This document shows positions 25,602 to 28,756 of a DNA stretch of 49,835 nucleotides, one piece after another. The notes beneath the pieces were generated by a model, which saw nothing but the letters and a program-made list of their open reading frames with translations, was not told where the DNA came from and did not search any database. The position numbers and the translations under genes are program-made. Source of the DNA: Octopus sinensis (taxonomy: Eukaryota). Location of the stretch: assembly GCF_006345805.1 (NCBI RefSeq), contig NW_021834451.1, forward strand, positions 1-49,835, given 5' to 3'. Numbering within the stretch: the stretch's first letter is position 1; the number at the start of each line of letters is the position of its first letter.

Positions 25602-25857
25602 AAAATACCAAGTCGTTAACAAATTCGAGAAAATACACTAAGTAATAGTAAAAAGAAAAGAAAGAATTGACTTGTGGTACTTGTTTCGGTTCTTCATGTT
25701 GTGAGTTCAAGTGCCGTCAGATTCTTTAGCTTTATCGACGTCAATAAAATAAACACCATTATCGTTTTATCTCTTTTTATCCCATGCATTCCTTGCCTTT
25801 TCCCTTAATGAGAAACCCTAATTTAATAATATTTTGTATTCTCTACTTTATTTACAG

Positions 25858-26005
25858 TAACAGAGTTAAAAGAGTTTATAGACAATGTTCAAAAGGAGTG
25901 TGTGGGGGCAACCATCTTTATCAACAGTATGTATGCTGTGCAGGTTTGTTCTGCTTGTGTATAGGATACAGCTGCAATTGTGTTTACCGCCCATGGGCCT
26001 TGTAA
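25858..26005 (+). CDS. Gene 2, terminal exon 3a (NRVKR|VYRQCSKGVCGGNHLYQQYVCCAGLFCLCIGYSCNCVYRPWAL*); spliced product 97 aa
   Basis: Acceptor TATTTACAG|, phase 2; RVKR site; framework C-x4-C-x10-CC-x4-CxC-x4-CxC. Confidence 0.85.
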
Positions 26006-26421
26006 ATTTACCTTCGTATTGCTCTTGTGAATTCTGTGGATAATATCATTATACGCCCAGTTGCAATCTCTTTTCTGATTTTTCTTGTAAATTTACCTTC
26101 GTATTGCTCTTGTGAATTCATGTGGATAATATCATTATACGCCCAGTTGCAATCTCTTTTCTGATTTTTCTTGTAAATTTACCTTCGTATTGACGTTCTG
26201 CTCTTGTGAATTCTGTGGATAAATTTCATTCTTCTGAGAAAATCGATGAGATATAAACCCAAGAGAAAAACCTAACACAAACAAAGCAAAGGAACCAGAC
26301 AAACAACAAAAATACACTCAACTGCAACAAGAACGTCAACAAATGTTGTTGTTGTTATTGATGTTGCAACATCTCCTCCTCCTGGTCCACATCGTCGCCG
26401 CTGTCCTCCCCCCTCTACTTT

Positions 26422-26466
<45 letters not shown>

Positions 26467-27292
26467 CTTTTCAACTTTGAAATCTAATCAATCGTCAGAT
26501 CCTACAACAGTAGAAAACTATGAATAACCATCAAGAGACACAGTGAAATATAAAATATTAACGAGCAGAAGTTTGATTTTGTACTTTATCCTGGAAAGAA
26601 ATTCACGTATGTTGCACCAAGAACTGAAATGGTAAAACAAGAGAAAATCTGCAAACCATAATCTACAACTATAAGTTTTCTAACAAACCGAAATTAATAC
26701 GACGAATGTATTTAATATCTAATATATTTATGCTATTAATCCGTCAAATTTTAATGAAATTCCAATGAAATAAATTTATTAAAGCATCGCAAGTACTTGG
26801 TGTTTCGTTATTCACTGTGCTATTTGTTTTTAAGCTATTGAAACGGTAAGAAAATCTCAGTGCTTCGTTCTTCGCTGTGATGTTGGCCTTTAAGTTATGG
26901 ATTTGGATGTTAAGATTTTACATTGCAGCGTCACACTATATTATTGTAAAAAATGTATTCCTTTAGGTCAAAATAGTGGCAATAATTTGAACACTGGCAT
27001 TCAATAAGCGTGACATTGGAATTCTTGATATATATTTATATACCAAGTCGTTAACAAATTCGCGAAAATACACTAAGTAATAGTAAAAAGAAAAGAAAGA
27101 ATTGACTTGTGGTACTTGTTTTGGATCTGCATGTTGTGAGTTCAAGTGCCGTCAGATTCTTTAGCTTTATCGACGTCAATAAAATAAACACCATTATCGT
27201 TTAATCTCTTTTTATCCCATGCATTCCTTGCCTTTTCCCTTAATGAGAAACCCTAATTTAATAATAGTTTGTATTCTCTACTATATTTACAG

Positions 27293-27506
27293 TAACAGAG
27301 TTAAAAGATATCGTAAATGTTCAAAAGGATCTTGTGAGGGCCACCCTCTTCTTCGACACTATCATTGCTGTGCAGGTTTCATATGTCTGTGTAGAAGATA
27401 TCACTGCTATTGTAGTTCACAAAATATGATTCATGTGGATAATATCATTATACGCCCAGTTGCAATCTCTTTTCTGATTTTTCTTGTAAATTTACCTTCG
27501 TATTGA
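27293..27506 (+). CDS. Gene 2, alternative terminal exon 3b (NRVKR|YRKCSKGSCEGHPLLRHYHCCAGFICLCRRYHCYC + 30-aa tail); spliced product 119 aa
   Basis: Tandem duplicate of exon 3a with an intact acceptor, RVKR and identical Cys spacing. No separate signal or pro exon was found between 26005 and 27293. Confidence 0.75.
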
Positions 27507-27734
27507 CGTTCTGCTCTTGTGAATTCTGTGGATAAATTTCATACGTCTGAGAAAATCGATGAGATATAAATCCAAGAGAAAAACCTAAGACAAACAAAGC
27601 AAAAGAACCAGACAAACAACAAAAATACACTCAACTGCAACAAGAACGTCAACAAATGTTGTTGTTGTTATTGATGTTGCAACATCTCCTCCTCCTGGTC
27701 CACATCGTCGCCGCTGTCCTCCTCCCTCTACTTT

Positions 27735-27781
<47 letters not shown>

Positions 27782-28756
27782 ACTACCTTTTCAACTTTGA
27801 AATCTAATCAATCGTCAGATCCTACAACAGTAGAAAACTATGAATAACCATCAAGAGACACAGTGAAATATAAAATATTAACGAGCAGAAGTTTGATTTT
27901 GTACTTTATCCTGGAAAGAAATTCACGTATGTTGCACCAAGAACTGAAATGGTTAACCAAGAGAAAATCTGCAAACCATAATCTACAACTATAAGTGTTC
28001 TAACAAACCGAAATTAATACGACGAATGTATTTAATATCTAATATATTTATGCTATTAATCCGTCAAATTTTATGAAATTCCAATGAAATAAATTTATTA
28101 AAGCATCGCAAGTACTTGGTGTTTCGTTATTCGCTGTGCTATTTGTTTTTAAGCTATTGAAACGGTAAGAAAATCTCAGTGCTTCGTTCTCGCTGATGTT
28201 GGCCTTTAAGTTATGGATTTGGATGTTAAGATTTTACATTGCCGCGTCACACTATATTATTGTAAAAAAGAGGGAGAAAGGAAAAAAAAAGAGTTAGAAT
28301 AAAAATGCATGCGGTAAAGCAGTAGAAGATGGAGTGGGAGGGAGCGATGGGCAACATACCCCAGAATTAATGATGTGCTCAGTCGCATCCCGCGGCGATG
28401 GGTGAGAGACGTAGCTGCAGAGAATGGCCAACGACCCTTGTTGTAGCTGCCACGCCAACATCCCGGGTTGCACTTGGTTTGATGATGATTTTTCTGTAAT
28501 TAATTGCCAGCTGGGCGACCACGAAGTCTCGTGCATTTTCTTGACTGAGTTGCAAAATGGTAGAAAAAATGCCAAATAATGACACACACACATATACATA
28601 TACCCACACATGTACACACACACACACACGTAATTATAATAAGGGATTGGTATTATGCCTCTCTATGCACTGAAAATAGACGCCAAATGACCCCAACACA
28701 CAAAACTAAAGAAAGAACACAGGTCGTAGTTGAGCAAATGAAAGATAATGAATTTA

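Follow-up and report, generated by a model that had tools for sequence, protein, structure and literature searches.

Tandem terminal peptide exons of variable copy number in a cysteine-rich peptide family of Octopus

Genes with alternative 3'-terminal exons, among them CALCA (calcitonin/CGRP), the immunoglobulin mu gene (secreted and membrane forms) and Drosophila lola with its array of 3' exon modules, have common 5' exons followed by at least two terminal exons with separate acceptors and poly(A) sites, and yield products with different C termini. Here we describe a gene with the same outline, gene 2 of a 49,835-nucleotide stretch of Octopus sinensis DNA (contig NW_021834451.1 of assembly GCF_006345805.1; the window). 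Gene 2 consists of one signal-peptide exon and one propeptide exon (together, the signal/pro cassette), followed by two tandem terminal-exon modules, a and b, that contain the mature-peptide exons 3a and 3b. The likeness to immunoglobulin mu goes further, as that gene has one form with a hydrophobic C-terminal anchor and one without, comparable to 3b and 3a. Unlike the terminal exons of these three genes, those of gene 2 are recent tandem paralogues with near-identical processing signals and a variable copy number, and we infer their alternative use from the DNA.

Conotoxin superfamilies combine conserved signal and pro regions with a hyperdivergent mature region that keeps its cysteine codons, and are encoded by three exons separated by long introns. 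The octopus family to which gene 2 belongs resembles them in its conserved signal and pro regions, its hyperdivergent mature part and its three-exon plan. Each conotoxin mature exon has signal and pro exons of its own, unlike gene 2, and the octopus cores are invariant between the two genomes that we compared, which excludes a high ongoing mutation rate. A Pfam search gave no conotoxin match for the octopus family.

In the inhibitor cystine knot (ICK) toxin genes of spiders, a signal exon is followed by a phase-1 intron, a pro exon by a phase-2 intron, and the last exon encodes the whole mature peptide; these genes showed no alternative splicing (PMC13172734). The coding-exon plan and phases of the octopus genes are identical to these and the eight-cysteine pattern is of the same type, with a CC pair and paired CxC motifs, whereas the octopus peptides usually end in a long hydrophobic tail. 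Searches with Pfam, PDB profiles and Foldseek found no homology between the two groups, all matches being below significance (E 0.05-7). The closest layout in a mollusc is that of the mussel MgCRP-I genes, which have a 5' untranslated region (UTR) exon, a signal exon (phase 1), a pro exon of about 100 nt (phase 2) and a last exon with a dibasic site, the cysteine region and the 3'UTR (PMC4558851). Gene 2 has this four-exon plan, the same phases and a dibasic site in its last exon. MgCRP-I combines a conserved pre-pro region with a hypervariable mature one, pseudogenes and cysteine-loss variants occur, and synthetic peptides folded with the pairing 1-2, 3-4, 5-6 and no knot (PMC4558851). The mussel peptides have six cysteines and a shorter second loop, C(X3-6)C(X1-7)CC(X3-4)C(X3-5)C, whereas the octopus peptides have eight and a second loop of 9-11 residues; MgCRP-I grows by whole-gene duplication or by several cysteine modules per exon, and not through serial last exons as seen in gene 2. 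Among 1.84 billion representative proteins an octopus profile obtained 15 hits, none of them assignable to Mytilus; four (P0015-P0018) were not identified to species. The exon phases held in common with the spider ICK and mussel CRP genes bear on the question of whether protostome ICK-like peptide genes share an origin.

Two terminal exons behind one signal/pro cassette

The coordinates of gene 2 and its surroundings are collected in Table 1. The product of the signal exon resembles the N termini of the Octopus bimaculoides proteins XP_052831635 and XP_052831634. The pro exon ends at 23642 within a serine codon (AG|T), which is completed by the first base of either terminal exon, so that 3a and 3b are in the same phase. 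The last exon opens with T|AAC AGA GTT AAA AGA, and 3a and 3b both encode NRVKR followed by C-x5-C-x11-CC-x4-C-x-C-x4-C-x-C. Their acceptors (...TATTTACAG|T, at 25857/25858 and 27292/27293) show 2 differences in the 60 nt before them. At the DNA level gene 2 thus has what defines alternative 3'-terminal exons, namely at least two terminal exons facing one donor (23642), each with its own acceptor (25858 and 27293) and poly(A) signal (26769 and 28088). The donor at 23642 serves 3a and would, we infer, serve 3b as well.

Modules a and b are 97.4% identical over 845 nt of 3'UTR and mismatched at 7 of 253 positions in their intron part, far above chance. The repeat unit of module b begins at 26951, 90 nt farther 5' than the homology of module a; these 90 nt match the intron of the neighbouring gene 1, and in module a an insertion resembling a short interspersed nuclear element (SINE) takes their place. 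The junction between the modules reads ...TTGTAAAAAA|TGTATTCC.... A tblastn search with all signal and pro peptides of gene 2's family detected no signal or pro exon at 26005-27291, an interval that is homologous to the 3'UTR of gene 1 plus the 90 nt of intron. The upstream region with the TATA-like motif is likewise single-copy: it lies 5' of the array and outside the duplicated module, with no copy between 3a and 3b. An earlier note on this DNA had proposed that only the last-exon module was duplicated, that both copies keep the acceptor, phase, RVKR site, eight cysteines and an AATAAA of their own, and that no signal or pro exon lies between them. Sequence reading and the tblastn search bore out all of this: module a recurs as module b, and nothing else of gene 2 does.

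The same note had treated 3a and 3b as equivalent, and here the sequence disagreed. The two exons are unlike in kind, 3a being tail-less and 3b tail-bearing. Where 3a has a stop codon 3b has none, and it continues for 30 codons (SSQNMIHVDNIIIRPVAISFLIFLVNLPSY) that correspond to the conserved, hydrophobic C-terminal tail of the family. Exon 3a ends early, at VYRPWAL, and its stop codon is provided, in a shifted frame, by the first copy of an 86-bp tandem repeat. The 3b tail ends, by eye, in ...VAISFLIFLVNLPSY, and AlphaFold2 modelled residues 44-66 as a helix with a predicted local distance difference test (pLDDT) score of 60-74.

We propose that unequal (non-allelic) recombination placed two full terminal-exon modules in tandem, each with its branch/acceptor region and poly(A) signal. 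On one route the donor at 23642 would be joined to the acceptor at 25858 and the transcript would end at the 26769 signal, giving a 97-residue precursor and a tail-less peptide, 2a. On the other, the 3a acceptor and poly(A) site would be bypassed, the donor would be joined to the acceptor at 27293 and the transcript would end at the 28088 signal, giving a 119-residue precursor and a tail-bearing peptide, 2b.

Arrays in related genomes and the peptide family

The conceptual gene 2 precursor matched three proteins: CAI9738877 of Octopus vulgaris, with 100% identity over the part in common, and XP_052831635 (LOC128250514) and XP_052831634 (LOC128250513) of O. bimaculoides, both labelled "uncharacterized" in RefSeq. 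The O. vulgaris reference assembly is based on Oxford Nanopore Technologies (ONT) reads and is independent of the window (methods in PMC10700109). Its locus OX597835.1:15884964-15925087 (L005) aligns to the window, with about 98.6% identity over gene 2 and substitutions at about 1-2% of sites. By this comparison the DNA of the window belongs to O. vulgaris or a very near relative, and to another individual or assembly than the reference. There, gene 2 has a signal exon, a pro exon, 3a and then two copies of 3b that are 1275 bp apart; the array positions are 28715, 29986 and 31261 in L005 and 25856 and 27291 in the window. The module number therefore differs, with 2 in the window and 3 in the reference. 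Both reference 3b copies carry a 14-nt deletion at the end of the tail that alters the last residues (...FLIFLVLTFCSCEFCG*). Copy number and structure thus vary within this 3-kb array. In the reference, a single unit of the 86-bp repeat follows 3a.

The EVM gene model of the O. vulgaris reference also takes the 3b acceptor. This model, CAI9738877 (window 5403-27435), fuses parts of the gene 1 pro and mature exons, the gene 2 pro exon, part of 3a, and 3b out of frame. A second model, CAI9738754 (273 aa, gene range 121 kb), likewise strings together several pro and mature exons. The family is mis-annotated, reference annotations being either "uncharacterized" or chimeric models.

In O. bimaculoides LOC128250514 (locus L001), a single signal exon (L001 10001-10063) and a single pro exon (about 12150-12217) precede three intact modules, m1 to m3, at 21902, 22869 and 26883. 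All three modules contain an acceptor, eight cysteines, a tail, a TGA stop and a dibasic site, which is KR in m1 and m2 and KK in m3, and no signal exon lies between them. At the annotation level, RefSeq XP_052831635 joins the pro exon to the second module and bypasses the intact first one. LOC128250541 (locus L003) is annotated with isoforms X1/X2 and X3, which have the same signal and pro exons and different mature ends, at L003 14787-15014 or at 31639-31806 plus 32389-32457. In the X1/X2 models (L003 10001-32460) a donor lies within the tail-coding part of the mature exon (after ...ILQT) and leads to a further exon, so that in annotated models the tail can be spliced out.

Modules also die. 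Intron 2 of gene 1 holds a decayed terminal-exon module (Table 1), which reads RRRRCSSFTWIYKSTKHDWCCTSQNMIQVMKNGIIQTLVTY, and the intron of LOC128250513 (locus L002) holds the orthologous relic with a stop codon (L002 12339-12500). As the relic is common to both genes, this module was lost before the two species split. In both genes the relic is proximal and the live mature exon is the distal one, which indicates that unused modules decay and that distal modules can be those used. The m1/m2 junction has its breakpoints about 65 and 130 nt away from those of 3a/3b, and cores of one species group together. We therefore rejected a single ancestral duplication for the two pairs, and module duplication is most simply seen as recurrent, although a later deletion at the junction could mimic this pattern. 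Patchy gene conversion is also seen between LOC128250513 and LOC128250514.

Overall, the array is real and recurs within the family with turnover of copy number, and both of its modules in the window are intact. The family itself comprises small cysteine-rich peptides, predicted to be secreted, so far restricted to Octopus and not previously described; literature searches for octopus with knottin or cystine knot, and for the accessions and LOC numbers, returned no description of it. In its genes a phase-1 intron follows the signal exon and a phase-2 intron the pro exon, and the terminal exon encodes the last pro residues with the dibasic site, a hypervariable eight-cysteine core and usually a hydrophobic tail of about 30 residues, followed by the 3'UTR. 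Two concordant searches delimited it, one with a profile against 5.8 billion clustered proteins and the other a full HMMER scan of the 1.84 billion representatives. Of the 15 hits of the HMMER scan, the nine that were identified comprised Octopus proteins, a "toxin Tbo-IT2-like" protein of a chiton (E = 6e-4) and a contaminant record labelled as sturgeon, and the four long proteins mentioned above were among the rest; all matches identified as family members were from Octopus. The O. bimaculoides members lie in two clusters on one chromosome (LOC128250511, 513, 514, 516, 517, 536 and 541), and others are found in O. vulgaris. Because nearly all members end in ...CSSQ..IH...N.I.QTVIAFLIFLVNLPSY, 3b represents the canonical form; 3a, with its stop codon, and gene 1, with its tail out of frame, are tail-less derivatives.

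Among the 8-11 family members compared, seven cysteine columns are invariant, and the eighth, the first cysteine of the first CxC, is absent only in gene 1. The earlier note had called the 3a and 3b peptides knottins. The cysteine framework fits, as both have the C-C-CC-C-C arrangement of knottins plus two further cysteines in CxC...CxC. Profile and structure searches added no significant support: Pfam assigned no family to 3a, 3b or gene 1, the best score among relatives being Toxin_9 with 14.4 bits against a cut-off of 21.3, along with a faint Toxin_7, and the PDB profile search returned only eight-cysteine spider ICK toxins (purotoxin-1, mu-agatoxin-I and omega-agatoxins) at non-significant E values of 0.57-7.4. 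Two AlphaFold2 models were of low confidence (mean pLDDT 62.6 and 60.6), with a beta-hairpin in both that was the only confident part, and their Foldseek matches (U4-agatoxin-Ao1a as the best, CBM1 and a double-knot toxin), although knottin-type among the best PDB hits, were non-significant (E 0.97-9). The knottin label is a plausible guess for these predicted peptides.

Divergence of the modules and use of the distal exon

The cores of 3a and 3b are mismatched at 28 of 105 positions and the flanks at 20 of 1103 (Fisher p = 2e-19). All eight cysteines are retained among 15 changed residues of 35 (P = 0.005), and both cores carry a selection-like signature. Nonsynonymous divergence (dN) between the cores is about 0.26-0.34 and synonymous divergence (dS) about 0.30-0.35, roughly ten times the divergence of the flanks. 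Because core dS is as high as dN and the cores have diverged so much more than the flanks, the sequences point to a mosaic history, with old cores set in flanks homogenised by gene conversion, rather than to recent positive selection alone. We rejected pure in situ positive selection between 3a and 3b, as dS equals dN in height. For m1 and m2 of O. bimaculoides, core dN is 0.43 and dS 0.17, and the tail is nearly unchanged.

Between the window and the O. vulgaris reference we counted no coding differences in 3a (0/150) or in 3b (0/198, for both reference copies), together 0/348. The flank rates of 0.9-1.6% predict about 3-6 such differences (Poisson P 0.004-0.04 for 3a and 3b together, 0.04-0.17 for 3b alone). 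The identity of the cores in two genomes rules out an intrinsically high core mutation rate, and ongoing hypermutation of the cores was rejected on these grounds. The pro exon of gene 2 also shows no differences (0/82). At its 3' end, module a shares 99.6% identity with gene 1 and 97-98% with module b. Among paralogues the tail has a dN/dS of about 1 and its last residues vary; its "conservation" is largely the slow, homogenised rate of the flanks, and the exact tail sequence may matter little. The array would behave as a birth-and-death system, in which unequal crossing-over adds modules, gene conversion evens out the flanks, cores stay distinct and unused modules decay.

We give even credence to the reading that gene 2 is one transcription unit that uses both 3a and 3b as alternative 3'-terminal exons. 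As no signal or pro exon lies between the modules, a secreted 3b product would need the gene 2 cassette, and alternative last-exon use is the most plausible route to 3b expression. The earlier note's proposal of two peptides made from alternative last exons is borne out in that the module duplication is genuine and has comparative support; the splicing of 3b to the cassette, at whatever level, is presumed. Several points weigh against this use of both exons. The core dN/dS of about 0.85-1.0 comes with a high dS, and flanks that are 97-98% identical may mean that the tandem arrangement is too young for decay. Unequal crossing-over may have brought in the diverged 3b core from a paralogue; the selection signature would then be older than the tandem arrangement. 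The sole O. vulgaris gene model for the locus, CAI9738877, is an out-of-frame chimera, and RefSeq gives one isoform only for LOC128250514. The X1/X2 intron of LOC128250541 crosses 18 kb that contain a stray signal exon as well as a family gene in inverted orientation, and the isoforms of LOC128250541 may be conjoined-gene or multi-mapping artefacts. An exact look-up in a collection of 15 billion proteins found neither spliced precursor, 2a or 2b. Lastly, 3a is proximal and its acceptor and poly(A) signals are equally strong, so that it should be favoured co-transcriptionally and should pre-empt 3b unless the choice is regulated.

Much of this would also be expected if only one terminal exon were used and the other were a passenger, a recent by-product of unequal crossing-over that has yet to decay. 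We consider this quite possible, though we lean away from it; the exon in use would then most likely be 3a, but it may instead be the canonical 3b if 3a is a damaged copy. The near-identical flanks imply an arrangement that is young or was lately homogenised, the presence of one 3b copy in one genome and two in the other indicates rapid and possibly neutral turnover, the relics show that modules die, and the three-module LOC128250514 has its single RefSeq isoform. Moreover, 3a is without the family tail, the reference 3b copies have the 14-nt deletion at the tail end, and the proximal signals match the distal ones in strength. Against a passenger stand the intact cores, with every cysteine kept at 27% nucleotide divergence, and their invariance between genomes that differ by 1-2% in the flanks. 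Three intact modules also persist in O. bimaculoides, and a distal module is used in LOC128250514 and in gene 1/LOC128250513.

The earlier note had itself named the observation that would undo its claim, that 3a and 3b are alleles of one exon placed in tandem by the assembler. Uncollapsed haplotypes could in principle yield near-identical tandem flanks, but the 3a-then-3b order, with 3b twice, recurs in the independent ONT-based assembly, which removes this objection. Moreover, the unit of 1.3-1.4 kb is far below long-read length, the junction is clean with 90 nt upstream of module b that module a is without, analogous arrays exist in O. bimaculoides, and the cores differ at 27% of sites. We rejected a haplotype-merging artefact, which is hardly credible. 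Translation of 3b (and 3a) without the cassette, from an in-frame ATG within intron sequence kept in RNA that either starts inside the intron or retains it, is also very improbable. In-frame ATGs do precede both acceptors (27230-27292 and 25795-25857), in the window as in the O. vulgaris reference, with an open frame M(HSLPFPLM)RNPNLII(V/F)CILY(Y/F)IY into the exon, and the product (MRNPNLIIVCILYYIY-SNRVKR...) would have a hydrophobic, signal-like leader. These ATGs are not kept in gene 1 or in any O. bimaculoides module, however, a polypyrimidine tract encodes hydrophobic residues by default, and the module has no promoter-like copy of the gene 2 5' region; the open frame is probably a by-product of the tract.

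If the distal exon is used as an alternative to 3a, gene 2 would diversify secreted peptides compactly, since the duplicated part is no more than a terminal-exon module of 1.3 kb that relies on the promoter and cassette already present. It would then be a mirror image of variable-first-exon clusters, and one gene would supply soluble and tail-bearing versions of a toxin-like fold, with a module number that shifts even between closely related genomes. A regulated switch between a soluble peptide (3a) and a membrane-tethered or differently sorted one (3b, through a tail resembling a glycosylphosphatidylinositol signal or a transmembrane segment) seems unlikely to us. If true, it would be an invertebrate counterpart of the secreted and membrane forms of immunoglobulin mu, or of lynx1 and the secreted Ly6 toxins, and a mode of peptide-repertoire expansion undescribed for ICK-type peptides. 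The tissue-specific or stage-specific switching envisaged by the earlier note is pure conjecture. The most fitting description of gene 2 is an array of terminal peptide exons, variable in copy number, in an octopus cysteine-rich peptide family, for which the functional reading is plausible; whatever the fate of 3b, the analysis defines a hypervariable cysteine-rich family found so far in Octopus only.

Neighbouring genes and repeats

Table 1. Positions of gene 1, gene 2 and associated features in the window.
Feature	Position	Strand	Remarks
Gene 1 signal exon	4146-4212	+	tblastn
Gene 1 pro exon	5381-5411	+	short (VAPLTKMLL); CAI9738877 begins MLL|SERLKR
Decayed terminal-exon module, gene 1 intron 2	7597-7773	+	tblastn; Cys codons lost, no alignable acceptor
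Gene 1 live mature exon, coding part	11164-11299	+	ERLKR|ASCSIAGCWLHKLNRHCGCCPGYKCSLTATYCLCYLGSP*; stop 11297-11299; 8 Cys, one position shifted
Gene 2 upstream region	21853-22126	+	TATA-like motif and probable 5'UTR exon; 98.5% identical to gene 1 2889-3163
Gene 2 signal-peptide exon	22870-22933	+	MKGISVLLLCVFISYTFSVKK + 1 nt; 64 nt, phase-1 donor G|GTAAGA; sequence reading, tblastn
Gene 2 propeptide exon	23561-23642	+	..VAPVHLETGDYVSLSLSNRSLSNRTK + AG; 82 nt, phase-2 donor AAG|GTAAGA
SINE-like repeat directly 5' of module a	25245-25604	+	copies at 3163-3559, 30502-30884(-), 31241-31625, 33221-33401
Terminal-exon module a	25605-26953	+	253 nt of intron 2 (polypyrimidine tract, acceptor), exon 3a, 3'UTR, poly(A) signal, downstream flank
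Exon 3a, coding part	25858-26005	+	(S)NRVKR | VYRQCSKGVCGGNHLYQQYVCCAGLFCLCIGYSCNCVYRPWAL; stop TAA 26003-26005; 8 Cys, without C-terminal tail
86-bp tandem repeat in 3a 3'UTR	25999-26192	+	2.3 copies; contains former tail-coding sequence
Module a AATAAA	26769-26774	+	followed by GU-rich element; kept in gene 1 and O. bimaculoides LOC128250513
Terminal-exon module b	26951-28269	+	342 nt of intron-derived sequence, exon 3b, 3'UTR, poly(A) signal
Exon 3b, coding part	27293-27506	+	(S)NRVKR | YRKCSKGSCEGHPLLRHYHCCAGFICLCRRYHCYC + tail SSQNMIHVDNIIIRPVAISFLIFLVNLPSY; stop TGA 27504-27506; canonical family architecture
Module b AATAAA	28088-28093	+	GU-rich sequence downstream identical to that of module a

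Genes 1 and 2 are paralogues in the same orientation. Identity is 98-99.6% in the 5' flank, the signal exon, intron 1 and the 3' end but only about 76% in the pro-exon region, and the DNA of the mature cores cannot be aligned, a mosaic that suggests patchy gene conversion. The aligned blocks are 2889-4591 with 21853-23312, 5233-5676 with 23411-23921, and 11812-12283 with 26482-26953. The tail sequence of gene 1 is present out of frame at 11308-11391. Gene 3, a third member of the family that is less closely related, shows a signal exon (34122-34194, MMKSTVALYFCFCVLIPETFSHDR) and a cysteine-rich exon (41200-41446), which reads C-x6-C-x9-CC-x4-C-x-C-x9-C-x-C and has a hydrophobic C-terminal tail of its own.

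The window is AT-rich, with many microsatellites and SINE-like repeats. The SINE-like repeat is about 360-400 bp long and has, by eye, a tRNA-like 5' end, in which ARAGORN detected no intact tRNA; one copy directly abuts the 5' edge of module a and may have produced a 9-bp target duplication (AAGTCGTTA). By eye, intron 2 of gene 1 contains a mariner-like remnant (6100-6672) with terminal inverted repeats (ggttgtccggaaagttcgtgccgat...) and a C-terminal transposase-like frame. Large foldback-like inverted repeats lie in the same intron at 10200-10800 (centre 10467-10505), with a similar one at 8470-8900, and the centre of one of these elements is marked by a short telomere-like run of (CCCTAA)n.

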